This document shows positions 19,449-51,000 of a stretch of 64,000 nt of DNA, in pieces. The position numbers were made by a program, and so were the translations under genes. Every line of letters starts with the position of its first letter. Position 1 is the stretch's first letter. Below the pieces are notes generated by a model, which made no database searches, had not been told where the DNA came from, and saw only the letters and a list, made by a program, of their open reading frames with translations. The stretch comes from Oculina patagonica (lineage: Eukaryota). Location: the NCBI RefSeq assembly GCF_052425735.1, contig NC_135761.1, positions 14,756,001 to 14,820,000 on the forward strand, written 5' to 3'.

Positions 19449-22400
19449 ATGCTATTTCTGTTCCTGGAGGCATCATTGTCCTACGATGGTAAGTCAACCA
19501 TCTTCTTTAAAGAAAAAAAAAAAAAAAATCCCATCATGAAGCTAGGGTCCTGATTACAATGCAGCTACTCGAACCGGGCCAGTTGGCCACTGGTCTGTTT
19601 ACGAAAATGTTACCCATCCATTCAGTTCTCATTACAGTTAACGTATTGATTGGTCAACTTTCTGATTGATTAATTACTGTGCGGAAGTTCCGAAACAGTA
19701 ATTAATCAATCAGCATAACTAGTCTGTAGTGTGGAATAATGGGAACATATAAATTAGCCGTTTTAGTTAGTTTGTATTGGTAATCAAGTGATGACGAGTG
19801 AAATTAGGAAATAATTTCACGCGCGTTTTCTCAAAGGCTCGGGAAATTATTAGCATTTTGACAAAATGCAAGTGAAATTATTTCCTTATGTCACGAGTAT
19901 ACCATTTGATTACATTTTAATATCATAGGTGACAAATTGCGCTTGCAATCGTAGGTTTTTGACTGGTATATTGCATCGCAACTGGAAACTTCGAGCTTTG
20001 CCGGAAAAAGTTGAAAGCATACATCTTGCTCAAGTTCGTAAGTTTTTTAGTCTTTGAAGAAAACCTTTTAGAAATTCCTTTTTGCCGTTGACAAAAAGTT
20101 TCAAAGATGAATCAACTGTCAATTATTTTTCACATTATGACCGTAGTTCGTCTTGAATGAACTGAAAACGGTGCCTGTGTAAAACGCTTAAAAATCCGCT
20201 CAATGCCTTTTTTGTAATTGGCTTAAGTCTAGAAGTCGTTTTGACGTTTTGAAATATAAAATATCATCAAAAGTTTTATTATATGGCCAAGGCTAGCTGG
20301 CTGAGATGAAATTCAAGCGAAAATGTACAAAGTTTTTAAAGCTTTAAAACATCTTTTATTACAAACGCCATCTTGCCGCTAACTACGTTGCCATGGCAAT
20401 TTTATAATTTCACATGTGAAATTATAAATTAACGTTAAAATTTCGCGCCAAAATTAAGGAGTAATTTGTCACCTATGATTTTATGAACGTTAACATGAGA
20501 AGTCCCCAAAGTAAAATATTTTTAAGCGTCTTTGTTATGAAGAACCTTGATCTAAGCATCGTCTAACTTTTATAAGCCATTCCTACAACTATGAGTAACA
20601 AGAGTAACAACTATGTGGTACTCTATTGCAGTATGGACATACTTTTAATCAGATTCGTTGCCAGGTTCTTAGAGTATTTAAAGTTGGAAATGTCTGGGTT
20701 AATGAACCTCGATTTCCACGCTAGCTGGGGATGGGGATAATTATATGCTTGTGATATAAGTATGCTGTATAACTGCTCTCTGGCATGATCAAATTAACAA
20801 GAGTCTCTAATTGACTATTTTGTCAATAAGAGGATAATGAATAAATTCGAATGCTTCTAAAGTACACCACATTCATAATTTTGCTTTCTTAGATATTGCT
20901 AACTCGAATCGATTGCTTCTGTTTTGTTATTTTTTTGTTGTTTCCGCATATTTTTTTGGGCGCTTTTTTTGTTACTGCCGCGGCAATGTTCAGGTATCAT
21001 AGCTTAGTTAACGTCAATTTGAAATGGGAGTCTCCATGCACGAATCGTTAATTTCATTTTGTGTCATTGTTTTTATTTCATCCAGTCAAAGCGCAGGGCA
21101 ACCCCTTCAATCCAGGAAAATATCGATTAGCTGGCTCCTTAAATGTGTTACCCAACGGTAACGTGAATCTTCGCCTGAATGCTAAGAAGCAGGGTGCTGG
21201 ACCGAGCCTCCAGCCTCCCAGCGTTACGGTACCAACACCAAGCACAACTGGTTTTACAACTGGAACTCCAAGCGGAGGACCAATCAGCACGAGTACATTT
21301 CCAACGACAGGGTTCAGTACACCAACTGGCACACCAACTGGCACACCAACTGGCACAACAACTGGATACGGAGGCAGGATGGCCGGTATTTGTGTGACAA
21401 GTCAACAGTGGGCAGGGGAGGGCAACTAAGGTGTTTCACAAAAAAAAACTAAGGTTTTTCACAATAATTTAGATCTTCCAGTTTTTACCCACCACCACAC
21501 CTCACCACATCTTATTACACCACACCCCACCACACTACACCTGGCACCACAACACACCACTTTACCAAAACCAAACCACGCCACACCGCACACCACCTCA
21601 CCACACCACACCACGCCTCACCACATCTCATTATACCACACCTTACCTTACTCTTACCTCACCTCACTTTTTTCTGGTGTTTCACAATAATTTAGACCTC
21701 CTCATCTTTACACCACAACTCTCCACACCACACCCCATCTCTTATCTTTTCACTCAGTACAGCTCTCCACACCCCTTCCACCCACCCCTCCACACCACTA
21801 CACCACACCACACCATACCTCACCTCACTCTTACCTCACTTTTTTAGACCTCCTCGTCTTTATACCTCAACTGACCACACCACACCACACCACAAGTCAT
21901 CTCATTACACTACACTACACCTCACAACACCACACCACATCACACCACACCGCATCACGCTACACCCACTACAACAGACCACACCACACCACACCACAAG
22001 TCATCTCATTACACTGCACTACACCTCACAACACCACACCACATCACACCACACCGCATCACGCTACACCCACTACACCAGACCACACCACACCACACCA
22101 CACCACACCACACCACACCACACCACACCAGACTACACCACACCACACCACACAACACCACACCACACCACACCACACCACACCACACCACAGTAGACTA
22201 CACTAGACTACATAGTACCACCGTATCACACCTCACCATATTACTTCACTACAATTTTTTCTGTTACTAAAATTTTTGTTCGTTATTATGCCAACGAAAT
22301 GTTTTTGACTTGTAGGTTCCAATCCAAGACAAGTTGGCCTCGACTCGCACAATCAATACCGAAGAGTCCACAGCGCTCCTGGTATGCAGTTATCCTCACA

Positions 22401-23653
22401 ACTTAACAATGACGCCCAGCGGTATGCAACCAAACTTGCTCGTGAGAGTCTGTTTAAACATGACCCAAATAGAAGAGGCCAAGGCGAGAACCTGGGCCTA
22501 CAATGCGCTCGGGGTAGTGATGCTGATTTAGTAAAGAAAGTCGTGGACGCATGGTAAGTAGACATTTAAAAAGTAGAAAACATTTTCCGTGTTTCTATCG
22601 AGTTATAGAAACAGGAGTGGAAGTTTGGGAGAATGATAAATGCTGTGGGAACACAAGCCGATAGGCGAGTGTCTCCACAACTTTTTAGAGTTCTCCCAAA
22701 GTCGTTCTTTTGCATTGCCTATTCCAGCTCGCATGGGTATGTCGTGACTTATGATTGCCGTGACTACGACAACTGTCTGTATCTCCCTCGAGATATATAG
22801 AAACACGATTTTTAGTTATTATTTACCGCCGACCGGTTAGCTCAGTTGGTAGAGCGCCGGCTCCGTGCGGGAGGTCTCGGGCGGTCCCGCCGGCCCCTTC
22901 TTTTAAATTATGGAGATTTTTAAAATTTTTTTTTTTTTTTACCCCTCTTTTTTTGGGGGGAAAATTTTTTTTTTTTAAATTCTCCTTTTAACCAATCAGC
23001 CCACGTATTTTCCTTTAGCTATTTTCTAAATGATAATATTAGTCAAGTGTTAACAAACAGTGTAAGGCATATCTCTATTTGAGAGATGGCAGAAGTTATG
23101 GCACTTGTGAGTTTGCCTTTTCGCGCCTAGTCGTGCACATAAAACCTCCGCATTCGCCCGGCGTCTGCTTGTTTTTAATATATAGAGGTAACCGCTAAAT
23201 AAGATGATGTGCTACAATATTTGTAACTGTGACATCTGAACGCGTAACGTGGCAGCACTTAATACATGCAAATTCAATTGTACTCGTTTCAACTGTTATT
23301 GCAGGTATTACGAGGTTTGTCAGTACAACTTCAATAATGGAGGTTTTTCTGGTGTCACCGGTCACTTCACGCAAGTTGTGTGGAAGGGAAGCACACAGCT
23401 TGGCATAGGTTACGCCAGAGGATCTTACAACTTTAATGGCAAAAAGTTTGACAACTGCCTGTTTGTGGTTGGCCGATACAAGGAAGCTGGAAACATGCAG
23501 GGGGATTTTCAGCGTAATGTTTTGAAGGGGAGTTTCAATAAGCAAGCCTCGTGTCCTCCCCCTGGGAACTATGGCAAAAGAAATGAGCTTTCTGCGAAGT
23601 CAGATGCAGTTAAAAGAGAATTACCAAAAACCTGGAACTTGTTTTGTAATTAA
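19449..23653 (+). CDS. CAP-4: secreted CAP/SCP protein, about 308 aa; exons 19449-19488, 21086-21385, 22316-22553, 23305-23653
   Basis: N-terminus MLFLFLEASLSYD|VKAQG is paralogous to CAP-3 exon 2. CAP motifs: SHNQYRRVH, AQRYA, FKHD, GENLGLQC, W|YYEVCQYNF, GHFTQVVW, CLFVVGRY. 927 nt in frame; the true start could lie in an upstream exon. Confidence 0.88.
21490..22235. repeat. (CACCA)n microsatellite in the intron before the CAP-4 CAP exon
   Basis: Long caccacacca arrays, in the same intron as the CAP-3 (CACCT)n. Confidence 0.95.
22825..22885 (+). mobile_element. Truncated head of tRNA-derived SINE (family B)
   Basis: ggttagctcagttggtagagcgccgg matches the element starting at 29157. Confidence 0.6.
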
Positions 23654-23789
23654 GCGATGATGTTACATTGTTTTATTTCTATTATGAAATTTGACATGAA
23701 TGAAGACGGGATAAATAAAACACGATGTTGTCGTCAGGCGTCCGAGCTTTATTTCACTTGAACAGAGATTTGTTTTTGAAAACATGTAC

Positions 23790-24025
23790 AGTCGTTAGTT
23801 TCTTATCCTCGTCTCGATAGAATTAAGCAGCAAGGAGTATTTGTACGCCCCCCTTGATGGGAATCTCGTCCATCGCAGGGTATCCCACAGCATTGATTAT
23901 TTCGCCGATACCCGTTTATACACCTGGGTGGAGAGAGGCACTTTGAGAGTAAAGTGTTTTTCAAAGTCTTGAACTGGAACGACCGTTAGGAGTCCGGCGA
24001 GCTAACCATTACAGGCCACCCCTTC
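23790..24025 (-). mobile_element. Degraded family A SINE
   Basis: Reverse-complement similarity to 11528-11822; occupies the same position as the copy at 33930-34218. Confidence 0.65.
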
Positions 24026-25242
24026 TCCAATATGCAAATACGATTAATTACTCAGACTAGTAGTAAATTTTTACTGAAATTTTAACGCAGACACAGAAAT
24101 TAGATCAAATTAGGCAAGTGCAGAAGATGGTTCTGGCTTATTACTGCGGTCCTCCGCCTTAACCTTTTATTTTTAAAAATTATACTTTCGAATGCTTCAA
24201 CATACATCTTCAGAAGTGACCATTAAATACATTGGAAATAAATTAAAATGTTNNNNNNNNNNNNNNNNNNNNNNNNNNNNNNNNNNNNNNNNNNNNNNNN
24301 NNNNNNNNNNNNNNNNNNNNNNNNNNNNNNNNNNNNNNNNNNNNNNNNNNNNNNNNNNNNNNNNNNNNNNNNNNNNNNNNNNNNNNNNNNNNNNNNNNNN
24401 NNNNNNNNNNNNNNNNNNNNNNNNNNNNNNNNNNNNNNNNNNNNNNNNNNNNNNNNNNNNNNNNNNNNNNNNNNNNNNNNNNTCCTGATTAGATACTAGT
24501 CTTTCATGTGACATTTAAATTTATTTGTAGTATAGCGAACAGTCACTTCTGAAGATAAAGGTTGGAGCATTTGATGTTTTGTTATGTTTGTCACCGCACA
24601 ATGTCATTTATTCCTACTAAGACTGAAATAGCCCACGAATAAGAGTGCTTCCGATTAAATCTTTAAGGTTGTTTTTTGACAGTCGCTATCTCGGCATTAA
24701 CTGGGGTGAAGTGGTAAGCTTTCGTTGAGAGTGTTTACAATTCCTTTTCCTACAGCTTCCTTTTCCTACAGCAGATCCCCTAAGATAGGAAACCTAGGTA
24801 TGGGAAGTCATCCTTTCAAAATAAATGAATTTTGACTGAAATAAATGATGATGGGAATAACACTGTCATCTATAGTGATTGGAGCGTTATGGAAACCACA
24901 CCCTCACTTCCCCGTCGATTGTGGTGATCGCCAGGACGGCATTTGCAATGATCGCCTAGTTATTCATTGATATTCTTCGGAGATGGTTGCAATCATTTGA
25001 AAACAACTCTTCAGGAACATTACGATACCTGTTATCAATAAAAGGACACAATGCGTTGAGACTTTCAGATTCTATCGAACATGACGACTGTTTTTCTCGG
25101 TCATAGCTATCGGTAGCGATAAGATGGCTGCAGGGCAAAAGGCCGAATGCGACGAAGTTGAATCTCCGTCATGTTTCTTTAACTTTGTCCTATTCTCTTT
25201 GGAACTGGGATGATAAAAGTATTGACGAGGATGTGCAAATAA

Positions 25243-25345
25243 CAGTCTCCTTCGCCGTCGTTGTTAGGCTTGTCACTCAACGTTCTTTCCCCAAATTTTG
25301 GAGAGCGCTTCGTGACGACCCAAGTAACGGCTGCGAAGGAGACTA
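25243..25345. mobile_element. Small MITE
   Basis: Imperfect TIRs agtctccttcgccgtcgtt ... aacggctgcgaaggagact. Confidence 0.55.
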
Positions 25346-26569
25346 ATAAATAACTAAATAATATTTCGTAAAATAATAGACGGCAGCAGATGATAGATTG
25401 AACTGAAAACGTCTCAATCGTTTAATTAAACAAACACGTTTTTTTTTAGTCAATCACATTTAACTGCCAATCCTTAACTTAATTAAACCGGGCCTGCAGT
25501 TATATCATTCCCAGGCTACCACGGCCCGAGATAGCGGTAAATTCATTCTTGCAGAAGAAAACTGTTCGCTTCTCGGATCAGATAATGTCCGCGGACAAAT
25601 ATCAGTGCATATTTTCGCGCCATGGAACTATTGTTTATCTAGTAAATGCTTACCTCTAGTTAGTGATTTTCAGCTTTTGATTGGTTCCCTCCGCAGAATC
25701 TGAGCCATTTCCAAAGTTGACCAAATAGGGAGAAATGACGAAGAATTCCCTGACGGGATTTTGTGGCGCGACAAAAAAAAAAAAGATCGAGGAAGACGCC
25801 CCAAGAAGTAGAAAATCTAGAAAAAGTGACACCGCGCACACTTGAAAGTCACAAAGTTGGGTAGAAAAATCGCGCGCGGTTTTCATTTTGGATGCTCAAA
25901 TAAAAACACGGTATAATCAAACAACATTCACGACTTTCGTATTTTCAATTAAAATCTTAGTGTTTGCCATGTTTCAGAGTGGCTTGCCAGTCCTGGTGGC
26001 CAAAATTTTTCTAAACTAGTCGAAGAAATGTCGAAAGAACTGAAGAACTGTCTTGCGATTGTTCGACAAGACTTCTTCAATGATATCCATTCGTGCCGCC
26101 ATTAACCAGTTTCACCGCCACACTGCACACTGCAGTTCTTAATATAATAATTGGTCACGCCGCTGTTACAGGTGAGAACAAGTGAATCTGTTCCCTAGGG
26201 AGCAAGACCGGTTTTGGTCAAGCACAATCTGTTAGGATTAACCGATTTCATCAGTCGAGTTCCAACAACAGTAAAACAAGGCAAAAAAATATTTCCTTGT
26301 CCTCAGTATTATTTCCCCAGTTGTAATGTTCGAATCCAATTTGGCATTATGATGGCGATTATGGCTTACTTTGAAGAAACCTTTGACATTCTTCTCGACC
26401 TCGCCGCCTGCATGATTCAGATTCACATTCGCGCGGCTCTCTTTTGATTTGCATAACGGTCATGTGACACTTACTTTTATGTAAGAATTTTTCTTAAAGC
26501 GGAAATAATTTTTTTTCCTTGCATCTTCCGGTTATAGTTCATATGAGTGTTTGAAAATTTACTAAAATA

Positions 26570-29225
26570 GTTATTAAACCACAAGTCCGAGTTTCTATGA
26601 GCGAATATAGTCAACGAGGTGAAGCAGAGTTGACTATCGCTTATAGAAAACTCTTGACTGGTCTACATTCCTTTCACCGCTCTTTGCAAACAAAGCTCGG
26701 CTGTTGACCAAATAATTGACTATACCTTATTGATAAACGGTTTGTATTTAAATTGCACCTGGTATAAGGAGACATAAAGTGAGTTTTATAATATTTCCAC
26801 GAGAACCTACATTGAGGGTCGAAGTCATTATATCCCCCAATTGCTTGTCTTAATATTATCCACCACTGGAATGAATTCATAAATTTGTTCATTGAAGTTG
26901 TTAACACTGGGCGATGCTTTGAGCTTTTGAATTAGCATTAAGAAATATACTTCTTTGAGTCAAATTCAATTTTTGCGTATACAAAAATTAACATTTATTG
27001 GACGAGGTTGAGTAAAATAGCGTGATTTGTCAGTGGCGAGCAGATCAATTGATCTGCGAGACACTGACAAATCACGATATTTTGCGAAAACAGAGTTCAA
27101 TAATTGTTTTATCATTCGATCACTGAATTTGTTTCGCACAAAGTACCTTTGGGAACTGCGTGGAAACCGCACTATTTCTTGAGGAATTAATGCAGACNNN
27201 NNNNNNNNNNNNNNNNNNNNNNNNNNNNNNNNNNNNNNNNNNNNNNNNNNNNNNNNNNNNNNNNNNNNNNNNNNNNNNNNNNNNNNNNNNNNNNNNNNNN
27301 NNNNNNNNNNNNNNNNNNNNNNNNNNNNNNNNNNNNNNNNNNNNNNNNNNNNNNNNNNNNNNNNNNNNNNNNNNNAGAAAAAACTTGCATTGAATGATAA
27401 TTTTTTTGTTCAACTGTTGACTCTCGAGTAGAAACAAAACAATAAATGAAAGCTTGCTTTTGTCCACAACTTCGAATTATTCGCGTTCATACCGTGGCCG
27501 TCAAGCCGCACGTCCTGATCACGTGCAAGTCCAGGGTTCAAGCTGTTGTCACTGAAGGAGTTGGTGAGTTTTTACTCGCCCTAGGGAGTTATACAGTTTT
27601 AATGCACGCTACGTCATACGTTCTCGTCCAATAGGACACTGCATTTCAGTTAAGGGCGGGGGTATAACAATACTATATCACTCAAACCCAGCTTGGACTT
27701 TCGCTTGTTACGGCGATTGAACTAATATCGCAGTACGAGGCGTCAAAACAAAACGGCGAAGGAACAAATTGTAGTTCAGTAAGTAATGTCTGTAACTGTA
27801 GCTATAGATTTCAGAGCAATAACAGCTTAGTAATATAATTCCCCTTAGCTTCGATTATATGTTATATGGACGAACGCCATATAAGTAGAAGAAGATAAAT
27901 GCCTTTAGGATACTCGTTCCATCTCTTACGTATTTTATGCTCAGAAAGCCAAACTAACATTATCTATCTAATACCGTTGTGTTATCACGGACTACTTGGG
28001 AAAATATTCTTTGTCACAAGTGACAGGAGGTGGAACAATGTCAGTATTTAAAGTATCCGGTAATTTACACAAATTGCGAATGAAAATTAATGATCACACG
28101 TTCACAAGTGTTTGTGATTACATAACGGTATTGTGACAATATTGTGACAATAATTGGAATATTCTTCCCTCGACAATGGACTGAAATCCAGCAGATGACT
28201 TTGTCTATTCTCTTGAGTAAGATTTTTGTTTCGTCTCGTTTTCTACAGTATTTAAGAACCACCTTGTATGATGTAAATTTTCTCATTCTGATGATGGTAG
28301 AGCTTCGATCTACCGAAATTTAACAGTTTATGTACCAAGTCGGTCATTTGTGTCCGAACTTCTCGGACACAATGAACCTATTCTGGTTATTCTTTGTTCT
28401 TCCTTAGCTTGTTTTAAATTTTGCTAGAAAAATAGTTTAATTAATTTAGCGGTTAAATTACGAGTGGAGTTTTCTATCAGGGGACAGCCAACGTTTGCTG
28501 TCGCTGAAAATTGATGTAGGGTAAGAAGTCTAAACTCTTTGCTCTGTCACTTGTTCTGTCACATACAGAAATCATAATATAAATTGGCAAAAAACAAATG
28601 GCAAAACAAGCCATTGTTTCTCAAGCAAATGTCGACTATCCAAAACAGCCAAGTATACTTGGCTTGATGTTTACATGCAATCGATAGCCGTTTTTGCGTG
28701 CTTGTGAAAACTGTTACCGTTGTCAAGGATATGATCTTCATTCATCATTTCATGCACGAAGCCTCTTCCTCTTCCTTTCGATCAATTGATCCAGCTGAAA
28801 ATATTATCGTCCCACACCAATGTCACTCATGTATATAACAACGTTGAACAAGTGATATATATAGGACGTGAATTATTGGTTTGCCGTTACATTGGACAGA
28901 GCAAATCATTGTTATTTCAACGCTACGTTATTTGACCATATAAGGTCAGAATATACGCAAAATATAACATGTCATTAACCTATAGTATAAATGACAAGAA
29001 AAGTGAAGTTGAATAATTCACATTTTTTTTCGATTGTTTTACACAAACTACTTTCACTTGTTTCTTATAGTTTTCTCATCGCTAACGGGCTCGAAAAAAA
29101 AACTACGACATTTGTAAAATTCCTGCGTTTATCATCTGCGAAACCATCAAATAAAACCACCGCATGGTTAGCTCAGTTGGTAGAGCGCCGGACTGCTGTG
29201 CGGGAGGTCGTGGGTTCGAACCCCA

Positions 29226-29266
<41 letters not shown>

Positions 29267-29384
29267 TGTGCTGCCTTTGTAATTACATCTGCAAATGGTT
29301 AGACATTCTAGTCTTCTCGGAAAAGGACGATAAACCGTAGGCCGTCTCCTGTATCTTCAGTGTTATGGTCAGCAGGGGACGTTA

Positions 29385-29416
<32 letters not shown>

Positions 29417-31886
29417 CTTTATTAACGTGTCTAAAATGTTTAGCTGAGGGGAAAAGTCCCCTCTACTAATTGTGGACACCTGACTAAGAAAAAACTTTAA
29501 AAAACTTAAACCTATCATTATACAACTATTACAATTAATAATTTAAAGTTAAAACAAGAAGCTATTTACATAATAAAAACGGGTAAAAAAAGTAAATCTA
29601 TTTAGAACCCACACACTTATCGTAAAGAGTAGAGCACGAAGTTCCCGGTGTTGTGGTCTGGCCTTTGTGTAGTAAATTACAGTATGTGTACAGCGCATTT
29701 GAACATTACATATGAAAAATGCGCTATATAAATTGATTATCATTATCATTATCATTATCATTATAAGGTGTAAAAATTAACGCTATTCGGTTTCCATGGG
29801 AGAAACATAATTCTCAAGTCTAAGTGGTCATGATATGATAAAAATAGCAAGCATTTCAGCGACTTGTTAAGCATTATTTCAAATAGCTCGAGGCGGATTG
29901 AGTCTTGAATGAATAAGAATTTCGTAAATTAAACTTCAAATTTATTTCGGCACTTTTTTAGTTCAAAAGTATTTTGAGATGCCTTGCTTTTTCAATCCGT
30001 GCAGAAAGTGCTTGTGCTTTCCGATTAAAACTTGAATTGAAGCATGCATTATGTAGGATCAACTGTCAACATGTTTAGAGCAAGGTCTAATAACCATAGG
30101 TCGAAACTTAACCGAGTTAGGAATCTTTGCATGCAAGAAAGATCTAAGGAAAATCGTTTTTTATCATCATTTTTTCAGCAGGATTTAAATTTGCTAATGG
30201 ATGGCCAAGTCATTCCTTAAAAGTAAATTGTAAGAGGCGAAGATTCCTTGCGCCTGACTATTTTTCTCATTAGGAAGGTATGGGGACGTGCCATGAGTTA
30301 ACTTTGCTTCATTTGTTTGTTGTCCCATTTCAGACCACGAGATAATATCAGAATAATATCGTTCAACTTCAAACAAATTCACGTTTTTAGGAATTATTTC
30401 CAGAAGAACAACACTTTGGAGAGATCAGAACTGGGCAATTTACAGACGTAGACAAAACGGTCTATTATTTAAATTGATAATTAAATTATTATTCCATTTC
30501 AGCTGCACTTATTTTGCCCAGAAGTCGAAACATGGCCGCATGGAAGCGTTTACTAACATATTGGATCTTGATTGGATTCTTCATATCGGGGGAAAGGTAG
30601 GCAAAGTTTCTTAGCAAATGGAAGATGTAAACCAGATAATTCTATAAATACGTAATACTGTGTAGCCAGCGGAGATAAACATATTTTTCTTGCTGATATC
30701 TTCTTGCGCGCTGCCCTGCATGGGCTTATAGTAGTTTAAAAGGCCTTTTTTTAGTAGACACATTGAAGGAAGGGATGGAATTGTGCGTTTTTAGAAAACA
30801 ATCTCTACAACGGCAGCTTATATTCAAATAAGATTTAAAATTTGCAAAATTTCTACAACCCTCATAAATGTTTTCCGAATGTACCTAATACTTAAGAGTT
30901 TTCTTGCGTTTTGCCGTATCCCGAAAGGTTTCGTTATACTTTGCCATAAGACGCTCTCAAACATGACAAGTTCGGCATTAATATTCAAACAAACAAAAAA
31001 TACCAGCAAATTTTCCAATTCAAGTACTCGCAATAGGCTATTCTTCTTAGTGTATCGATATTAACCTAGATGACCTTGTAATTATTATATTAGTTTCTTT
31101 ATTTTTATGCAGCGCCAGCGTAAAGGATGAAGAAGAAACTCAAGTTAAACAAGTAACACGCGAGGGTAAAGCAACATGTAGCATATTTATACTAGATAAC
31201 TTATCTGCTTACCTCAATAAAACACTGACATGAATCAGTTTAATTCATTGCGTCTTGATCAGGGGCAGGAGGGAGAAAAAATGCGCACTATTGATGTTCA
31301 GCAATAATTCTTTAGCTGGGTAAATCAAGAGAGGCGTAGGTTCCAATCGGTGACTTTCCATAAGTTTTTATTGGCAGTCATCGTCACCATATGTTGGCAA
31401 GGAAATTGGCATTCAGCATACTTTTGAGCTTATATTTGGCATCTAAAACAAGCAAAAAAAATTAACACAGAGGAATTTTCCGGCTTCAAAAAAAAATTAA
31501 ATCGTTTCAACATGAAAAAAATAAGGAGATTTACTGTTTGCTTTCGAGATTGGATGAGTTAATTTGTTCGTTTGATTATTTGTTTGTTTGTTTGTTTGTT
31601 TGTTTGTAAGCGCGTGTGATCATTGTGGATAGCAAATGAAAGTAAAAGTGTTGCTACAGAAACTTACATTTTTAACTCGTATTTACATTTTTTTTCCCTT
31701 TTTTTTACTCCATTACTGTTGTATTCTCTGAATGGTGGGTATACAAGTGTGCAAAATAACTGACTTTTATAGCAGAATGAAATCGCTAAACAATTCAAAG
31801 TCGACATTATGATTCTTGGAAGACAGCCTAATAATTCCCTTTGACAATATTCCCAGTGTTTTAGTATATTTTGTAGTTTTATAAAA
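26570..31886 (+). repeat. Segmental duplicate of the lipoxygenase upstream region, exons 1-2 and most of intron 2 (paralog about 41880-49153)
   Basis: Colinear similarity, e.g. 26805 vs 42110 (cctacattgagggtc), 28730 vs 46055 (tgtcaaggatatgatcttcat), 30520 vs 48070 (gaagtcgaaacatggccgcatgg), 31830 vs 49097 (taatattccctttgacaatattcccagtgt-like). Confidence 0.92.
29157..29762 (+). mobile_element. tRNA-derived SINE (family B) with (ATTATC)n tail, interrupted by an AT-rich insert of about 220 bp
   Basis: A/B boxes ggttagctcagttggtagagcg and gggttcgaaccc. The paralogous site at 46501-46525 (aaaccatcaaataaggtgtataaa) is empty. Confidence 0.8.
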
Positions 31887-33691: not shown

Positions 33692-33929
33692 TCACCTGGA
33701 AACTATGGCAAAAGAAATGAGCTTTCTGCAAAGTCAAGTGCAGTTAAAAGTGGAGATTCGAAAAACCTGGAACTGGTTTTTTAACTAAGCGTTAATCTTA
33801 ATTGTTTATTTGTATCACGAAATTTGACGTGAATGAAGATGGGTTAAATAAAACACGATTTTGTCGTCAAGCGTCTGAGCTTTATTTCACTTGAACAGAG
33901 ATTTCTGGGAATCAGTCGTTAGTTTATAA

Positions 33930-38940: not shown

Positions 38941-39190
38941 CCGTAATGATTCGATTAAGCGCCCTCCTTCCAATAAGCGCCCCCTTCCAAATAAGCGCCC
39001 CCCTTCGATTGTGTTTTTGTCAATAAGCGCCCCTATTCCAATAAGCGCCCCCATTCTAATAAGCGCCCCTGATTCGGTTGTTTTTCAATAAGAGCCGTGT
39101 CCCGAATAAGCGCCCTGTCGCGAATAAGCGCCCTCCCTTGAGGTGCCAAAAGTAAATAAGCGCCCCGGGCGCTAAATCGAATCATTACGG
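38941..39190. mobile_element. MITE with TA target-site duplication (Tc1/mariner-superfamily style) and internal AATAAGCGCCC repeats
   Basis: ta[ccgtaatgattcgattaagcgccc ... gggcgctaaatcgaatcattacgg]ta. Confidence 0.85.
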
Positions 39191-39288
39191 TAAATACGAA
39201 ACAACCACGGTCTCTTGCCCGTCCTCTTGACCTTTACGGGTTCCTAAAGCAGAAGCAAGTCACGGAGTCCCAAAACGCCTTCTTATTT

Positions 39289-40251: not shown

Positions 40252-43200
40252 AAGGGCCTTATTTCTGGTAAATACTTTTAACTTCAATGATAGCGGAGCT
40301 CCCAGCGGCACGAAGGGCCGCAAAGCAGAGCCCCATACCCTTAGAAAATTAACAGACCCATGCTTTTGGTTTTTCATGGTCATCATGGCTAGCGGCATAG
40401 TTCGGAGGCGCAAATGTCTAGCGACGAACGCCCCCAACATGGCGGCCATACTCCAGAAATAGGTTTATGGTTATGGTTAACGTCAGCTTACATCTTTGAT
40501 ATTGGACATCGATGTCATGGTCAATTGACAGCTGTCAAAACAACCAGTATCACATGATACTGCTGACCAGTATCACATGACCATATCGCGGGCTCACATA
40601 TAGAACATCATCGAGGTCGAATGTTTTTTTTTAAGTTAACCGCTGTCTAAGTAATGGTTTACATTGGATCGTGGGCTCAAGTTCTATATATATTTTATAT
40701 CGGTCAGTAAATTCGGACTTTTGAAAAGGGCGAAGTAACTAACCGGGGAGCTCCGCTTTTAGGCTTGGCTAAATATTTATATTGCTTTGCAGGTATGAAG
40801 TGGTTTGTGACTACAATTTCAACGACCAGAAATTCTCTGGTGCCACTGGACATTTCACTCAACTGGTGTGGAAAAAAAGTACCAGACTCGGTCTGGGTTT
40901 TGCCAGAGGATCTTTTAGCTTTAAAAGGGAGGGGGGGGGGGGGGGTAATGAGTGCTTCAAGGAAGCAGGGAACAAGAAGGGAGCATTTCAACAGAATGTC
41001 GTAAAGGGAACATTCAATAGGAAAGAAACATGTCCCCAAGAAGAAAAACGTAATAGAGTTTCTGTTAAGTTATTGAATGTTTTGTTGAATCCTTGAAAGG
41101 AAAATTGAGGCAGATTACAAACCAGCTTAAAAAAAAGTCAAATATACGTAATAAAAAGGGCCTAAGGTTTCGTAGTTCGCCATTTAGAATCTAACGTAGT
41201 TGGTTGAAGATCGTTAGTCGTACGAACAATCTGCGTCATTTTCCAGTAGAAAGACCTGAAGCTGTAAATCAGCCGACCTGTTATAAATGAGATGTTAAGT
41301 GCATGGCTATCAATTAAATTGTAATTTCACCTACATGTGACATTAAAATATGTGTAAAATCTTCAAAAATTGCTGCTATGATTGCCAAGGAATATTGGGG
41401 AGGATATTGCCGGTGGGTCTAAATGACCGTGCACGTGCAAAATGTTAGGCAATCTGGATGATCTGTTGTTTTGATGAACATTTTAACATTGCAAACTGGT
41501 TGGGCGGTGAAGCAGCTCTCGCAAGATCTCACATGAATGGCTTGCAACCTTTCGAGAGAACAACAGAACAAACAACAGGAACAATGCCCCTAGCTTGCCC
41601 CCACCAAAACAAAAGCAACAGCTACACTAGAGGACCTGTAGAATAAAAAGCTTAGACGAACAGCTACACTCCTGAACTGGTTACTGCGCTCACATTCTGA
41701 TTAGGTCCTAGTCCATGAGAATTAAGAAGCAGATTAAAAAAATTCTATCGGTGTTCTAATGCAATGCTGCATTTAAACTTGGTAAGCTATCGTACAATAT
41801 CAGTCATTAGCATAACCCAGTGACTGAATATTAGGCAAACTGGCAATCTGACTGGCTACACAAGCGCGGTCTAATTAACAATAAGACCACGAGCCCGAGT
41901 TTTCTATGAGAGAACATAGTCAGCGAGGTGAAGCAGAGTTGATTATAATTATCGCTTATAGAAAACTCGGGCTTGTAGTAGTCTAATTGTTTAATAGAAA
42001 ACAGCGAGAGAACTTATCAGATTCGCGGATTTCTAATAGAACACCGCCGAGTGTCTAAGCATTTAATGACGAGCCGCAAGGAAAACAGTGAGTTGTGTTT
42101 CCAGGAGAGCCTACATTGAGGGTCAAAGTCATTATAACCCCCAATCGCTTGTCTTAATATTATCCACCACTGAATTTTCTTCAGCTGAAAATAACATGAA
42201 TTCATGAATTTATTCATTGAAATTGTTAACACTGCGCGATGCTTTTAGCTTTCGAATTTGCATTAAGAAATATCCTTCTTTGAGTCAAATAAATTTTTTG
42301 CGTATACAAATAATTTTTGTTGTTCAGCTGTTGACTCTCGAGTAGGAACAAAACAATGAATAAAAGCTTGCTTTTGCCCACAACTTCGAATTATTCGCGT
42401 TCATACCGTGGTTTTGAGCCGCACGTCCTGACCACGTGCAAGTCCAAGGTTCAAGCTGTTGTCACTCAAGGAGTTGGTGAGTTTTTGTTTGCCCTAGGGA
42501 GTTATACAGTTTTGACGCGCGCTACGTGATACGTTCTCGTCCAATAGAAAACTAAATTTCAGTTCCGACTTGCTTATTGGGGGGTGGGGGTCTTACAATA
42601 CTTCATTACCCAAACCCAGCTTGTTAAAGCGGTTGAACTTATATCGCAGTAGGTGCATGAAAATCAGTGAAGGAACAACCTGTTGTACGGTTAGTTATGT
42701 CTGTAACTAGATGTTATGTGTGTAACTGTAGATGTCAAAGTCATATAATTGCCCTCGATGGACAAACGCTATATAATTAGAAGAAGAAAATGCCTTTAGG
42801 ATATACTCGTTCCTTCTTCCACGTATTTTATACACAGGAAACCAAAATGCAAATACATTTTCTGTGCAGAAACCAAATTATTTAAAAACAATAAAGACTT
42901 CTAGTACCTGATGAGAGTTTCAGTACACAAACGACTGAAACGACGAAGGATAACCCGAATATAGGTTCATGCGCCCGAGTATTCAGACAACAAATGACGA
43001 CTTACATTTGTAAATATATATAAACTGTTATTTTTCGGTATAAGCTATACCATCATCGGGCTAAGAAAATTTTCATACAAGGTAGATCTTAAATACTGTA
43101 GAAAACGAAACGAAGCAAAAAGTTTACTAAAAAGAAAAGACAAGGTTTTCTACTGGATTTCAGTCCATTGTCGAGGGAAGGACTGTCAGGCGTTTTAATT

Positions 43201-43752
43201 TAATGATGTACTAAGACTCTGTATAGGAGAAGATTCCAGTTATTCGGCACAATCTAATGCCGTTGTGTTATCACGGACTACTTGGGTAAAATATTCTTTG
43301 TCACAACAGACAGGAGATGGAACAATGCCAGTATTAAAGAATCCGGTGAATTACACAAATTGCGAATAAAAATTAAATGATCGCACGTACGCGCGTCCGC
43401 AAGTGTTTGTGATAACACAACGGTATTAGATATTCTGATGATGGTACGGTATAGCTTATACCGAAATATAACAGTTTATCTACCAAGTCGTCATTTCTTG
43501 TCCGAATTCTCGGGCACAATAAGCCTATTCGGGTTATCCTTTGTTCTCCGTTTCTAAATTCTGTTAGAAAATAAAAAATAATTAATTTAGTGGTAAGATT
43601 ACGAGACTGGGGTTTTCTATCAGGGAATAGCCAACGTTTGTTTGGGTGAGCAGTACAATCGTTTGCTAATACATTAGAGAATGTAAATCATTATTATTCC
43701 AATGCTACGTTATTTGATACATTAGACTATTGTATTCCCCCATTGTCAGAAT

Positions 43753-43942
43753 TAGGCCTGGTTCACGTAACCACATGGACATAACAGCATAAAGAAAAGA
43801 TCAGTTCTTTCCTTATGTCGTTATGCTTATGTTATTATGTTCCAACTATGTGCTGACATAAAACATCAACGTGAGGTGTTTTTTTGCATTTGCGCGACCT
43901 TGCCGTTATGTTGTTATGTCGCTAGTGTGAAACAGGCCTAAG
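43753..43942. mobile_element. MITE
   Basis: ttaggcctggttcac ... gtgaaacaggcctaa; absent from the paralogous unit near 46340. Confidence 0.65.
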
Positions 43943-46647
43943 CGACATGAAAAATGCAGTGGAATAATTCATGTTATTCGATGGTTTTGCACATAATACT
44001 TTCACCTATTTCTCACAGTTTTCTCACCCCTAATAATAATGGGCTCGGAGAAAAGCAAAAACTACGACGCTCGTAAAATTCCTGCGTTAATATCTGCAAG
44101 ACCATCAAATAAGATGTATAAATTTTAAAACGATATTCGACGCTTTCGATGGTACAACATGATTCTCAAGTCTAAATTGCCATGACGTGATAAAAATTGC
44201 AAATTATAACGAGCATTCTAGCGAATTGTTGAGCCTTATTTCAAATAGCTCGAGGCGTATAGTCTTGAATGAATAAGTATTTTGTAAATTAATCGTCAAA
44301 TTTATTCAGGCACTTTTTTATTTCAAAAGTATTTTGCCGGAGATACCTTGCCTGTGCTTTGCGATGAATAAAAAGGATCTGTCCAATGATAAGTGCTCGC
44401 GCACACGCGTAGTTGGCAGGTGAGTTTTTGTTCGCCTTAGGGAATTATACAGTTCTGACGCGCGCTACGTAATACGTTCTCGTCCAATAGAAAACTGCAT
44501 TTCAGTTAAGGTGGGGGGGGGGGGGGGAGAGAAGGTCTAACAATTCTGCATCACTCAAAACTGACATCGCAGTACGTGGCATCAAAACAAACAGTGAAGG
44601 AACAACCTGAAGTTCAGTAAGTAATTTCTGTAACTACGTAGATGAAATGCGTGTAATTGTAAATGTCAAAGCAATAACAGCTTAGTAATATAGTTGCCCT
44701 CGATTCTATAGACGAACGCAAAATGAGTAGAAGAAGAAAATGCCTTTAGGATACGTTTCTTCATCAGTATTTTATACACAGGAAGCCAAATTCAAAATAC
44801 ATTATCTGTACAGAAACCAAATAATTTGAAAACAATGAAGACATTTTACGTTTTCTTAGTTTCTAAAACTAAGTACCTGACGAGAGTTTTAGTACATAAA
44901 CCACAAAGGATAACCCGAATAGTCATTGTGCCCGAGAATTCAGACCCCTGAACAAATGACGACTCCTGACTTGTTATATATATGAACTGTTATATTTAAG
45001 TATAAGCTTAACCATCACCGGACTAAGAAAATTTATATACAAGGTAGGTCTGAAATACTGTAGATAACGAGACGAAACAAAACGTTCACTCAAGAGAATA
45101 GACAAAGTGCTCTACTGGATTTCAGTCCATGGTTGAGGGAACTTGCTAGGCGGTTGGTGTAATATATGCCTCTTTATCTTTATGCTTGGATGGAATATTC
45201 CTTGTCACAACTGACAGGAGGTAGAACAATGTCAGTTTTTAAAGTATCCGGTAATTTACACAAATTGCGAATAGAAATTAAATGATCGCACGTACGCGCG
45301 TCCACAAGTGTTTGTGATAACACAACGGTATTAGATATTCTGATGATGGTACGGTATAGCTTATACCGAAATATAACAGTTGCGAATGAAAATTTAATGA
45401 TCAGACGATAGCAAGTGTTTGTGATAACACAACGGTATTAGATATTGTGACAATAATTGGATTCTTTTCTTCATTTAATAATTGGAATCTTCTCCTGCAC
45501 AAAGAGTCATATTACATCAAACGCCAAGCACCTTCCCTCAACAATGGACTGAAATACAAATCTATTCACTTGAGTTAACTTTTTGTTTCGTCTCGTTTTC
45601 TACAGTATTTAAGGCCTACCTTGTATGTAAATGTTTTTATTCTGATGAGGGTATACCGAAATATACCAGTTTATCTACCAAGTCGTCATTTGTTGTCTGA
45701 GTTTTCGGGCACAATAAACCTATTCGGGTTGTCGTTTGTTCTTAGTTTCCAAATTCTGTTAGAAAAATATATTAATTATTTTAGCGGTTAGATTACGAGA
45801 GTGGGGTTTTCTATTAGCGAATAACCATGTAACGTTTGCTGTCGCTAAAAGGAAGTCGTGGGGTGAGCAGTCAAAATTCTTTATTTGCTCTGTCATTTAA
45901 AGAAAAACATATGATGTTTACAAATCAAATGGTAAAAAAATGCCATTATTTTTCAAGCGAATGTCGACTATCCACAACAGCCAAATATCGTCGGCTTGAT
46001 ATTTACAATCAATGGCCATTTTACGTGTTTGTGAAAATTATCACCGTTGTCAAGGATATGATCTTCATGCATCATTTCATGCACGAAGCCTCTTCCTCTT
46101 CCTTTCGATCAATTGATCTAGCTGAAAAAATTCTCGTTCCACCAATGTCACCCATGTATATAACAACGTGGAACAAGAGAAAAAAAAGGACGTGAATGCA
46201 AACAATTAATGGTTTGCTGATAAATTGGACAGAAGCAAATCATTGTTATTCCAATGCTTCGTTTTTCGACCATATAAGGCCAGGAGAAGACGCAAATTAT
46301 AACATGTCATGAAACTATTGTATTCCTTCATTTGGCAGAATAAATGTCAATAAAGATGTGGCGGGATAATTCATCTGTTATTCGATGGTTTTGGACAAAA
46401 TACTTTATAACCTATTTCTCGCAGTCTTGTCACCCCTAATAAGGGGCTCGGAGAAAAGAAAACCTACGACGCTCGTAAAATTCCTGCGTTTATCATCTGT
46501 GAAACCATCAAATAAGGTGTATAAATTAACGCTACCCGACGGTTTCGATGGCACAAACATATATCTTAAGTCTGAGTGGTCATGATGTGATAAAAGTAGC
46601 AAATTCTAAGCAGCATTCTAGCAAGTTGTTTAGCATTATTTCAAATA

Positions 46648-47391
46648 TAGTCCGGCGGCTTAGCTCCTGAATTGTGCGATTTTTGATACAAGCACCAAAC
46701 TTTGCAGGATTGCAAGCATTCACATACTAATCAATTCTCGATATAGTGTAAACGCTAATTTCTTATTTTCAGCTAGTAGCAATGAAATTTTCAGTCAAGA
46801 GACCCCTCCCCCACAAAGTACAACTTCTTGCGCTTTTATACACCTTTTATTGTATATTTTATTTCAAAAATACAGATATGAAAATGCTTTAAATTAGGCT
46901 TACGATTGTTATGTTTTTACATTGTACCATCTTTTTTATACCAATAATTTACTAGGAAATTATTGCATCGAAAAATATTTTTTGTTCCCCGCCCTCTGCT
47001 CCCTCGTGTCTTTCGTTTTGCGTTAGTATCCAGGTCTCTCGCGATTCATTCGCCAATCCCAGCGTTCGCCGTTCGCTAACAGAAGAAAAATACGAAAATA
47101 TAGAGGGCTGTAAACAGTCTAAATTAAAGCATTTCATTCTAAATTTTGTACGGGCGACTTGGTATCACTAATTGACATAATAGTATTTGTCTAAAAACCA
47201 GGACAAACAAATATTTCACGAAATTTCATCGATTTTAATAAATTACGTTTTCCATGGAAACTGGCGTTTTTCGGGCTTGGCACTATATCTGAAAAAACTT
47301 CTGTTGGTGGCTACTTTCAGTGTGCCAAATTGCATGCTTGTATCAAAAAGTGCACAATTCAACCAAAATTTCGAGCTAAGCCGCCGGACTA
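46648..47391. mobile_element. Non-autonomous DNA transposon with 19-bp perfect TIR and 3-bp ATA target duplication
   Basis: aaATA[tagtccggcggcttagctc...gagctaagccgccggacta]ATAgctcgagg. Empty sites ttcaaatagctcgagg occur at about 29878 and 44240. Confidence 0.88.
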
Positions 47392-48082
47392 ATAGCTCGA
47401 GGCGGATATAGTCTTGATTGAATAATTATTGCGTGAATTCTGAATCGTCGAATTTATTCGGGCACTTTTTTTATTTTAAAAGTATTTTTTACCGGAGATA
47501 CCTTGCTTTTTCAATGAAAGCCTATGCTTTGCTATTAAAAAAAAACCTAATTTAAACTTCCTTTAAACACACTCACAAAAACCAACGTATATACCAAAAC
47601 AATAGGGAGCATTTATAGCATGTAGGATCAACTGTCAACGTGTGAGGAAGATCTTTTTATATCATCATTTTTTCAGCAGGATTTAAATTGCGAAGGGATG
47701 GCCAAGTCATCTCTTAGCAAACTGAGAGAGGCGAAGATTCTCCGTGCTTGACTTGTTTCTCATTTATAGAGAGGTCTGGGGACATGTCATGAGTTAAATT
47801 AGCTTTTTTTTGTTTGTTGTCCCATTTCAGACCACGTACCGCGTATATCCTGATGGGTAACATACCCATCAGGATATATAATATCTTTCAACTTCAAACA
47901 AGTTCTCGTGGAAATAAGAGAATAATTTCCAGAAGAACAACTCTCTGGAGAGTATCACATGATCAGAAATGGGCAATTTACATACGTAGCTTTCAAGCTT
48001 AAAAGCGATCCATTATTTAAATTGATAATTAAAATATAAAATATTATTCCATTTCAGCTGTATTTTGCCGAGAAGTCGAAAC

Positions 48083-51000
48083 ATGGCCGCATGGATGCGT
48101 TTACTAACATGTTGGATCTTGATTGGATTCTTCATATCGGGGGAAAGGTACGTAGGCAAACTTTCTTAGCAAATAGGAGATGTAAACAGCGCAAACAACG
48201 CGAAATAATGCTATTAATACATAGTACTGAGTAGCAAGCGGAGAGAAATATATTTTGTACTTCTGATAACTTCTTGCGCGCGGCCCTGCATATTTTCCCA
48301 CTCAGGTACTCGCAATAGGCTACACCTCTCAGTGTATGGCTATAAACCCAGCTGACCTCGTTGTTATATATTTAATTATTATTTTCTTTATTTTTATGTA
48401 GCGCCAGCGTAAAGGATGAAGAAGTGGCGCGGGAAGGTCTGTTAAAGCAACACACAACGCAGTTATACTAGATAACTTATATGCTTACCTTAAGACACTA
48501 GATCAGTTTTTGGTTAGGGGCAGGTGGGAGGAAGAATGCGCACTATTGATATTAGCAATAACTCTTCAAATGGGTGAATCAGGAGAGACGTAGGTTCCAA
48601 TCGGTGACTTTCGATAAGATTTTATTGGCACAGTTAGCAAGGAAACGTTTGAGCTTATATTTGGCATCTGTAAAAAATGATCGAAACACAAAGGATTTTT
48701 TTCGGCTGCAAAAACACATTAGTGGCATTAGTGAAAATATTAGTGGTGGTGCACTGTTTGCTTTTGAAATTAGATGAGTTAATTTGTTTGTTTGCTTGCG
48801 TGTAAGAACATTTGATAACTGTTGATAGCAAATAAAAGTGAAAGTGTTGCGACAGAAACTAGCATTGCGGTTAATTATAGTTTGTTAAGTCCAAAGTCAA
48901 CTCGTTAATACATCAATGTTTCGGTTTAATTTATTACGCCATTACTGTTGTATTCTATGAATGGCGGGTAAACAAGTGTACAGTATAACTGACTATATAA
49001 AATGTCTCTTTTTTTTTAACTTCATATTAGTCCTTTCTAACTGCCGGGGAGTCTAACAATTCAGAATGAACACTATTATTCCTTGGTAGACGGCCTAATA
49101 ATTCCCTTTGACAATATTCCCAGTGTCTTAGTACATTTTGTAGTTTTATAAAACTAGCTCTATCTTTTCTTCATGGTTTTTGACAGAGGGCTCCAGCTGT
49201 CCAGTAAATCTTCCACAGAAGTCTACCAAGCGCTGTAAAGTTCTTCGGGAAACTGAACTGGCGGCTCAGAAAGCAATATATCAGCTCACCATAAAACCCC
49301 CCTTACCAATGCCTTTGGTTAACATGACCATTAAACAGCTAGCAGCTCACCATTCCCAAGATGAGTTTTTTAAGGAACATTTTACGAATTACTTCGGCAT
49401 GCTGATGAAGACCAGAAGACTTGGTGCCCAGTGGATAGCAGAACATACAGAGGAGATTACCGAATTTCAAGGATACGAAAACATTTATCACGAATTCAGA
49501 CGCAACATGTTAACTGTGAGTTAAAAGTTTAGAGAAGATACTACATTAATAGTGTACCAAATTAGTCGCACAGCTGTCAATTCAGATGAGATAAGAAAAG
49601 GGGGCGAGGGGTGTGATATGACAGCTCTTTTGTTGTTTAACAAAAACTGGAAACGGGATAGCTGCGCCCTGCTCACTGCATCCACGATTGATGCACACAG
49701 AGACCACAGTCAGGTCTTAAGCTCCGGCTGATCCAGGTGACGACAGTTTTCTTTAGTGAATAAATGTTTTCTGCTACGTGATTGGCCTGATAAAGCTCTT
49801 ATTTTTCTTACAACACAGGGCTCCGATTTCTTTCGATTTGTCTCAGACTCCGAGCCCTTCCAGGATTTTCTAAAGGATTGGCGAGATGACAACATATTTA
49901 CAGACCTTAGACTGTGTGGAATAAATCCTATGGTGCTTCGCAGGGTAACGGACGATGCTTGTAAGTGGAATTAATTATGGACTTGAATATATATCATAAG
50001 TACTTTTTAATAATCATTGAATACTATATGGAAGGGTGGAGTAGGGGCAGGAATACATCACTTGTGCCGAAAAGATATTTTCCCCATAAATTCCGTTTGT
50101 GACACATTTACATTTTTACAGTTTTTTGACTTGTCAACTGTTATTCCTAAAAATCACAGTAAAATGTATTTTTTATTCCCACGATTTAAGCTGACGTTGG
50201 GTTGAAATGGTCTGAGCTGAGCAAGGTACTCAATCCAAATTACAACTGGGAAGCTGCCATTCAAGCCATCATGAATGAACCACTTGACAAGGTATTAGAC
50301 TAGTTATTTTAACTTGCCGCCTTACTGGTTCAGTAGATTGAAGATTATTTTTTCCTGAATAGTTTACTACGGCCCTTTCGGAATGTAACTTACCTCTCGT
50401 TACAAATCATTTACCTAAATAAAAAGCCTAGAAAGTATCTCTCGTTCATGAAGTCATAAAAAAGAAATCAAACATTCTTCCATTTCCTTGTGAACCATAG
50501 TCGAGTCCAGCTGTTCAATCGAAGGAGAATTACAGCTTAGTTTTATCGACTCCATCGGTGAACAGATTAATTAGCTACGGGATAGTCTGACTAGTACATG
50601 TATAAATTTTAATTTCATTTGGCTACCAAAGAGCTCAATGTTTCAAAACGCAGAATCGACACCTACAAGAAAATGATCGAATAGTTTACCAGTATGATTA
50701 TTGCCATTACTTCCTCTATTTTCCCCGTTTATAGGCTGTTAAAGACGGCTATGTGTATGTTCTCCGATACGAAGTGTTCGATGACCTGATTTCATTTCCT
50801 GATGTGGCGGATACTCGTCCTGATCGATCTTTGTGGCCAACGACATCACCAATAGCTCTTTTTGCCGTAAAAGACAAACGCCTTCGCCCTGTGGCTATTC
50901 AAATCGATTATAAACCAGGTTTGAAAAGTTAAAGCCAAATATTTCTTTTCTTTTATAAATTAGCCATATACCCTACGAAAGTGATTTGACCATTGACGTT

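Follow-up and report, generated by a model that had tools for sequence, protein, structure and literature searches.

A chimeric gene that joins the 5' end of a lipoxygenase gene (LOX) to the 3' exons of a CAP/SCP-domain gene lies in a 64,000-nucleotide stretch of the stony coral Oculina patagonica (assembly GCF_052425735.1, contig NC_135761.1, positions 14,756,001 to 14,820,000), which is called the window here and whose coordinates are used throughout. On the 529-Mb assembly, the window carries six CAP/SCP-domain copies, all on the + strand, followed by a divergent LOX; the chimera is the fifth of these copies and its upstream parent, CAP-4, is the fourth. The first-pass annotation of this DNA had suggested that one tandem duplication explains both the chimera and the layout of the locus, and we found this supported by a collinear chain of self-matches with one joint, by similar ages of the duplicated blocks and by the lack of other copies of the LOX-derived block. 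We regard a single duplication event as the probable origin of the chimera.

The duplicated units and their joint

Alignment of the window to itself with BLASTN led to one collinear same-strand chain (E-values of the matches 1e-14 to 0), in which unit 1 (22219-31886) corresponds to unit 2 (31894-49153), both being adjacent and arranged head to tail. The layout described earlier, CAP exons with their flank and then a LOX 5' block, twice, is reproduced by this alignment with coordinates within about 20 nt, and the self dot-plot proposed at that time as a check proved to be collinear, head to tail and with one novel joint. The parts of the two units are as follows.

22219-24909, + strand: block A1, the end of a (CACCA)n tract, two CAP-domain exons and a 3' flank of 1.25 kb; its high-scoring segment pairs are collinear to 31894-35314
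24910-26793, no strand: middle of unit 1 (1.9 kb) without counterpart in unit 2, unique at 24910-25553 (0.64 kb) and made of dispersed repeats at 25553-26779
26794-31886, + strand: block B1, which copies the upstream region of the LOX together with exon 1, intron 1, exon 2 and almost the whole of intron 2
31886-31894, + strand: joint, with the last base of LOX intron 2 at 31886, about 6 extra bases, and CACCA units from 31891/31894
31894-35314, + strand: block A2, a CACCA remnant, CAP exons and the matching 3' flank
35324-36436, no strand: two dispersed-repeat inserts right after the A2 homology (search of the own genome)
42098-49153, + strand: block B2, the LOX's own upstream region, exon 1 (48083-48147), exon 2 (48402-48436) and most of intron 2

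The matches of block A are 22219-22601 / 31894-32272 (83.9% identity), 23018-23107 / 32917-33005, 23177-23771 / 33317-33904 (84.5%), 23976-24252 / 34165-34546, 24483-24829 / 34715-35048 and 24828-24909 / 35237-35314. Those of block B begin with 26794-26985 / 42098-42310 and 27397-27953 / 42310-42846 and go on to 31789-31886 / 49055-49153, and an extra pair, 26573-26653 / 41881-41968, may merely be a common repeat. At the outer ends of the duplicated region the N-terminal exon and the tract of CAP-4 continue upstream of A1, LOX exon 3 follows B2, and the open reading frames (ORFs) of both parents are open.

The B homology stops at TTTTATAAAA (31886 = 49153), within intron 2 and 33 nt 5' of LOX exon 3, which begins at 49187. 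Across the joint, the letters are ...TTTTATAAAA + AAAAAT + ACACCACACCACACCTCAC..., and on the CAP-4 side the joint coincides with the 3' margin of the intronic (CACCA)n tract. It is bridged in DNA by two contigs, X1 record 6 (31830-32307) and X14 record 11 (31617-31934). Alignments of its two sides revealed no homology and no clear microhomology, and because homology is lacking the joining would have been non-homologous. To this extent the earlier proposal of a microsatellite-associated non-homologous joining holds. A role of the microsatellite, in contrast, can only be suggested: as the tract fills about 80% of its CAP-4 intron, a break within it is expected by chance, and some support comes from a further copy on contig C1 (see below).

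Apart from inserts of transposable elements (TEs), for example the young TE at 29154-29764, no paralogue of B1 other than B2 was found in the 529-Mb genome. The 26.8-31.9 kb block matches only the 42.1-49.15 kb block, and the closer LOX paralogue that had been considered for it does not occur elsewhere in the assembly.

Both units have been altered since. The interval from A to B in unit 2 (6.8 kb) is occupied by two TE inserts, by CAP-6 and by the flanks of CAP-6; one insert (35324-35735) is 90-96% identical to many genomic copies, the other (35730-36436) 80% to two copies. Later inserts are present in B1 at 26986-27396, 29154-29764 and 30722-31010, the A2 intron is enlarged by high-copy repeats (about 32300-32850 and 33114-33381), and a further TE lies at about 33918-34164. 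Within B2, about 2.1 kb are duplicated in tandem (42310-44351 / 44419-46672; Kimura two-parameter distance, K80, 0.163), slightly more recently than the main event, and both of these internal copies carry an inverted stretch of 170-240 nt, at 42943-43180 and at 44903-45141.

Unit 1 includes two assembly gaps, which were left unfilled and overlap neither an exon nor the joint. The one in A1 (24253-24482) matches a 168-nt loop with (TGA)n in unit 2 (34547-34714), both flanks being collinear, and the second (27198-27375) falls within the unit-1-only dispersed repeat 26986-27396, which is at most 94% identical to many genomic copies; opposite to it, unit 2 is continuous at 42310. Around the (TGA)n loop, the CAP 3' flank forms an inverted repeat (34486-34802 and 24188-24570) with 69-nt arms that are 78% complementary. 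Two islands of 88-97% identity between B1 and B2, against a background of about 80%, were observed at 30480-30600 (LOX 5' untranslated region and exon 1) and at 31789-31886 (the last 100 nt kept of intron 2). Such islands point to constrained regulatory or splicing signals, or else to gene conversion on a local scale.

The chimeric gene and its parents

30532-33691, + strand: chimeric gene with a 203-aa ORF (ORF, GT..AG ends, joints on RNA contigs, NCBI model P0001)
30532-30596, + strand: chimera exon 1, LOX-type signal peptide, 63 of 65 nt identical to LOX exon 1
31113-31165, + strand: chimera exon 2, LOX type
31987-32224, + strand: chimera exon 3, CAP domain
33436-33691, + strand: chimera exon 4, CAP domain
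21061-23653, + strand: CAP-4, upstream parent (tblastn, Pfam PF00188, tandem repeats, exon ends)
21061-21429, + strand: ORF of the N-terminal exon of CAP-4
21493-22192, no strand: (CACCA)n tract (700 nt) in the CAP-4 intron (tandem-repeat search)
22316-22553, + strand: CAP exon a of CAP-4
23305-23653, + strand: CAP exon b of CAP-4
49187-56496, + strand: rest of the LOX, the downstream parent, from exon 3 onward, single copy (ORFs, PF00305 matches, in-frame reading of exons 1, 2 and 3)

All introns of the chimera have GT..AG ends and the 203-aa ORF is intact. The product is in frame because both broken introns, LOX intron 2 and the CAP intron, are phase 1. Together with the splice 31164>31986 (GT..AG), which crosses the joint, this bears out the fusion that had been placed at the unit junction. 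The splice was detected in the runs X20, X14 and X18, with 32223>33435 on the same single contigs, and the Logan contigs of these three RNA-like runs, from three organism codes, were 98.7-99.4% identical to the window. The RNA status of the runs is a guess of the tool, yet contigs that are spliced imply RNA. For X20 and X18, the shorter side of 31164>31986 (54) spans the entire B1-specific exon 2.

Matches to PF00188 above the gathering score (21.1 bits) were obtained for the exon ORFs 31959-32228 (29.4 bits) and 33404-33691 (22.1 bits), and no lipoxygenase domain is present in the chimera itself. Its CAP domain is 77-83% identical to that of CAP-4 and about 46-48% to Orbicella GAPR-1-like and Nematostella NEP-16. 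From its sequence, the product should be a secreted protein consisting of a CAP domain only, under LOX-type 5' regulatory DNA, and a LOX-like expression pattern would be expected.

In the NCBI annotation the gene is the hypothetical protein ACROYT_G012493 (P0001), whose first 167 residues are identical to the fused N-terminus. After ...RNGK this model departs from the last exon and is spliced to the (TGA)n tract (33436-34694), resulting in a poly-Asp tail. The RNA-like contigs run unspliced through 33435-33742, past the stop at 33689-33691, and the 3' end of ACROYT_G012493 is wrong.

The two CAP exons of CAP-4 form an intact 194-aa ORF. They had been described as its exons 4-5; their duplication stands but the numbering does not, as they are the last two coding exons and equal exons 3-4 of 4 in the CAP-3 model P0002. 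CAP-3 has a (CCTCA)n tract in the equivalent intron. In the NCBI model ACROYT_G012490 (P0005) this tract (15403-15840) is translated as HLTSP repeats, probably a mis-annotation, and P0002 ('ectin-like') looks like the correct CAP-3 model. As for the LOX, a PF00305 match at 55346-55633 scored 28 bits (cut-off 23.6), and exons at 52127-52306 and 55349-55495 were picked up by the genome scan. Its start (48083-49521) comprises a signal-peptide-like exon 1, a short exon 2 and an exon 3 without detectable Pfam domain. The CAP copies of the window, recognised by tblastn and Pfam PF00188, are listed below.

about 3150, + strand: CAP copy
9746-11083, + strand: CAP copy
14849-17008, + strand: CAP-3
21061-23653, + strand: CAP-4
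31959-33691, + strand: CAP copy of the chimera
36588-41096, + strand: CAP-6

Age of the event, further copies and CAP-6

It had been proposed to compare the divergence of the CAP flanks with that of the LOX 5' blocks, and clearly different ages were not found by this comparison, which rests on few data. Non-coding K80 was 0.168 for the A pair (0.142-0.194; 1143 sites) and 0.205 for the B pair (0.188-0.222; 3419 sites); per block it ranged from 0.09 to 0.28, with means of 0.177 for A and 0.167 for B. Synonymous divergence (dS) between the chimera and CAP-4 was 0.22-0.24 and that to CAP-3 0.67-0.81, and therefore the event is about three times younger than the CAP-3/CAP-4 split. Dates were calibrated with a relative R, represented by two Logan contigs, one reaching from LOX exon 2 to exon 3 (L033) and one with the last exon of CAP-4 (L028), and those of A and B agree within error. 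Unique changes in block B were 48 for B1, 38 for B2 and 32 for R over 578 sites, a star-like pattern (chi-square P = 0.19). The corresponding counts for block A were 28 for A1, 68 for A2 and 26 for R, or 16, 37 and 10 at non-coding sites only. No orthologue of the chimera is on record for R in ORF-level protein searches, and since R consists of contigs of at most 2 kb this is not evidence of absence.

A third copy of block A, A3, was found on another chromosome (contig C1:26790363-26792254, minus strand; loci L043/L024). A3 shows 94-95% identity to A1, with mismatches at about 3.4%, and 84-85% to A2, and A2 is 84-85% identical to A1 and A3 alike. As A3 is the sister of A1 (ultrafast bootstrap, UFBoot, 99), it is a later derivative of A1. 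Its left end corresponds to 22224, no more than about 15 nt from the boundary of A2 at the (CACCA)n edge, and it joins 23853 straight to 26208-26653, thereby skipping 2.35 kb. The CAP reading frame of A3 is open and ends with ...LELVL, and a (GGC/GGT)n tract lies 150 nt upstream. Its left joint is A|TC and a hairpin with a 9-bp stem is located near the right end. A Helitron reading of A3, for which Helitron ends were not examined, was set aside as a resemblance only; a processed retrocopy was ruled out, because introns are retained in A2, B1 and A3.

When outgroups were included, the maximum-likelihood (ML) tree of block A was (CAP-3,(S1,S2),(T,(((A1,A3),R),A2))), with a stem of only 0.005 under (A1,A3,R) and a terminal branch of 0.117 for A2. 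The relatives S and T branch before the duplication (UFBoot 88-90), and the approximately unbiased (AU) test does not tell whether the duplication or the split from R came first (P = 0.22 vs 0.78). An A duplication older than the B duplication, as read from the three-taxon counts, was dropped, since with outgroups the excess lands on the terminal branch of A2. For the same reason, this excess would be a rate effect rather than a deeper node, as far as the few data allow. From these sequences, both blocks would date the event to about the split of O. patagonica and R, after S and T had branched off, and the ages of A and B do not appear clearly different on these few data.

Since then, the copies have taken different courses. 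The CAP exons of the chimera and CAP-4 differ by one in-frame indel in 494 coding nt, compared to 12.2 expected at the non-coding rate (P = 7e-5), and omega is 0.41-0.44; the chimera thus appears to be under purifying selection. It has evolved faster, with 13 private amino acid changes in the chimera and 4 in CAP-4 (P about 0.03-0.05). An earlier stop removed a tail of about 31 aa from the chimera. In CAP-4, a 1-nt deletion (23620-23653) rewrites the last 12 residues and replaces the C-terminal ...LELVL tail; the ancestral C-terminal frame is kept in R, T, S, A2 and A3. The relatives, Stylophora and A3 all have the conserved ...LELVL tail. LOX exon 2 is shorter by 18 nt in frame than the long exon 2 common to R and B1, and as both of these have the long form it is the present-day LOX that lost 18 nt.

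CAP-6 is present in unit 2 only and was delimited by tblastn, tandem repeats and alignments.

36588-41096, + strand: CAP-6
36588-37906, + strand: N exon and mucin-like repeats
about 38384-38626, + strand: frameshifted CAP exon
40793-41096, + strand: last exon

A 1-nt deletion near 38513 affects its first CAP exon, and the conserved FDNCLFVVGRY core in the last exon is replaced by a G-run; CAP-6 is a probable pseudogene, unless these defects are homopolymer errors. Its Thr/Pro-rich mucin-like exon (36941-37665) contains about 4.3 copies of a 132-nt tandem repeat that are 85% alike, and the CAP-6 orthologue of relative S has a 402-codon ORF of a similar mucin-like kind. CAP-6 shares 48-54% aa identity with the other CAP copies (tblastn) and, because of this divergence, is older than the duplication.

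Synteny was compared in relative S (ENA ERZ25067872, contig ctg18891, ctg18891_10x; 35 kb covered, 1-35294), where a CAP-3-type flank is followed by CAP-4a, then by an inverted LOX exon fragment, CAP-4b, an inverted CAP-6 and LOX 3' exons. Within these 35 kb, there is neither a B1-A2 insert nor a chimera between CAP-4 and CAP-6, but S is itself rearranged: its CAP-4 unit is tandemly duplicated with units about 11 kb apart, and the inverted LOX fragment follows 50 nt after the CAP-4a flank. This layout fits an inversion within an ancestral order CAP-4, CAP-6, LOX, and the CAP-LOX neighbourhood seems to have been rearranged independently in S. As CAP-6 lies between CAP-4 and LOX in S, a duplication from CAP-4 to LOX should have spanned it. 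The earlier alternatives, loss of CAP-6 from unit 1 or insertion into unit 2, can therefore be weighted: unit 1 probably lost or skipped CAP-6, and insertion into unit 2 is disfavoured. Further contigs of relatives proved too distant or off-locus: L027 is a CAP gene without LOX within 10 kb, L030 is a LOX without CAP within 10 kb upstream (its contig has CAP genes at a distance of more than 100 kb), and L037 is equidistant from CAP-3 and CAP-4.

Competing histories and meaning

The history that we prefer would start from CAP-4, CAP-6 and LOX in this order, each in + orientation. About 13-14 kb, reaching from the (CACCA)n intron of CAP-4 to LOX intron 2, 33 nt before exon 3, would have been duplicated head to tail. 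The new joint (31886/31891) would have placed a second LOX promoter, signal-peptide exon 1 and exon 2 before a second pair of CAP-domain exons, and LOX exon 2, once spliced to the CAP exon, would yield the in-frame 203-aa protein, with CAP-4 and LOX remaining whole. Later on, CAP-6 would have been lost from unit 1, TEs inserted into both units and about 2 kb duplicated within B2; LOX exon 2 would have become 18 nt shorter, and the chimera would have acquired its earlier stop and evolved faster under purifying selection. A single tandem duplication with a later loss of CAP-6 is, in our estimate, slightly better than an even bet, the deletion of CAP-6 and the mechanism of joining being those parts that we infer.

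Several observations weigh against it. No CAP-6 remnant or deletion scar was found in unit 1, where the interval consists of 0.64 kb of unique DNA plus TEs, and a BLAST search of 24880-25600 against 35280-42120 (word size 6, E up to 5) gave no match. A2 lies on a branch about 2.3 times longer than that of A1 or R, at non-coding sites too, and the branch proportions of A and B differ (Fisher P = 0.028), so that a somewhat older A duplication is possible. With CAP-6 inverted and the LOX fragmented (its 5' part was not found), relative S offers no clean ancestral state. Repeated rearrangement of the locus, as seen in the internal B2 duplication (K80 0.16) and in the C1 copy, makes multi-step histories plausible. 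Finally, those contigs on which the joint of exons 1 and 2 was observed all carry the LOX-type T at 30545 and G at 30560. This joint was rejected as proof of the chimera's own exon 1, as such contigs derive from LOX or are unassignable, and for the use of this exon we refer to the NCBI model P0001, which predicts it.

One complex replication-based event, i.e. serial template switching of the FoSTeS/MMBIR type, is possible but not likely. Copying would have run along the CAP-4 3' flank, jumped over CAP-6 to the LOX upstream region, continued to intron 2 and returned to the CAP-4 intron, and CAP-6 would never have been in unit 1, which explains the missing remnant without any later deletion. The few extra or untemplated bases (AAAAAT) at a joint without long homology, further short duplications of comparable age, both direct and inverted (the internal B2 duplication, 42943-43180 and 44903-45141) and the C1 copy, which likewise joins 23853 to 26208, would all suit such a process. 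Its predicted second joint (24909-26794), however, is filled with TEs and unreadable, no microhomology is recognisable at the readable joint after about 20% divergence, and duplication followed by deletion is the commoner history.

Two events are less likely still. CAP-4 would have been duplicated to a full CAP-5, and a LOX 5' copy later inserted into the CAP-5 intron, replacing its 5' exons. The six-member tandem CAP array in a rearrangement-prone locus, the long A2 branch and the differing branch proportions of A and B (P = 0.028) speak for this, but two additional breakpoints are needed and the A1/A2 homology would end by coincidence exactly at the end of B1. A former full-length CAP-5 is also disfavoured because no CAP N-terminal exon or remnant was found by tblastn upstream of A2 (24910-31890). 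Moreover, the pairwise divergences and R-calibrated dates of A and B agree within error, and with outgroups the extra length of A2 sits on its terminal branch and not on a deeper node.

Capture of CAP-4 3' fragments by a mobile element (Helitron-like or Pack-type transduplication) is highly improbable: the C1 copy with its near-identical left end (22224), A|TC joint and hairpin near the right end would fit, but no terminal repeats, target-site duplication or element ends were found around B1 and A2, whose order, orientation and adjacency to the parents are exactly as a tandem duplication predicts. Despite the two assembly gaps in unit 1, a mis-join or haplotypes placed side by side can practically be dismissed, as the units differ by 15-20%, far above the allelic level, two runs from separate studies have contigs that span the joint, the chimeric exon-exon splice is found on RNA-like contigs of three coded organisms, and the gaps fall in a repeat loop and a TE.

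Exon shuffling through phase-compatible introns is a classical model, and the tandem duplication follows it in that breaks in two phase-1 introns joined a signal peptide and a short linker to a CAP domain; nothing but the specific partners is different. The two 3' exons of the chimera encode PF00188, as in other members of the CAP/SCP superfamily (GAPR-1/GLIPR2-like and 'ectin-like' coral proteins), but unlike its parent family the chimera lacks the N-terminal domain, the Thr/Pro-rich linker and the ...LELVL tail and has a lipoxygenase-derived signal peptide instead.

A head-to-tail duplication that ends inside two neighbouring genes is the standard route to chimeras described for Drosophila, where duplication-deletion constructs are listed as well (2017, PMC5460883). 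As in those chimeras, the 5' end of the downstream gene and the 3' end of the upstream gene meet at the joint with both parents intact. The O. patagonica case, from a stony coral, is in contrast old and fixed (K about 0.2) instead of segregating, the chimera has stayed open and spliced, with signs of purifying selection, and the duplication spans a probable third gene (CAP-6) that is absent from one unit.

The (CACCA)n 3' edge might also be a recurrent break or copy point with at least two independent partial-gene copies (A2 and A3), which would make the locus a small exon-shuffling hotspot; we put this forward as a doubtful idea, drawing also on the CAP-LOX rearrangements (the internal B2 duplication, and the inversion and duplications in relative S). 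According to a preprint on exon-shuffling hotspots (bioRxiv 10.1101/2025.10.28.685065), small regions repeatedly receive or donate gene fragments, and the 3' half of CAP-4, copied at least twice from one tract edge along with nested duplications, is a parallel to that description. Unlike the hotspots described there, O. patagonica has only two copies and their recurrence is without statistical support.

The chimera is already annotated as a hypothetical protein, and its origin does not appear to have been described in the searchable literature. Its mechanism is textbook and leaves the general view unchanged; the microsatellite edge, flagged as a possible repeated breakpoint, is the only part that may go beyond the ordinary. 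Nevertheless, the same CAP domain now stands behind two promoters and two N-termini, a pair for studying the swap of promoter and signal peptide in corals, and, away from the usual model organisms, the locus is a natural and well-documented example of a new gene arising in one step through a tandem duplication that crosses gene boundaries.

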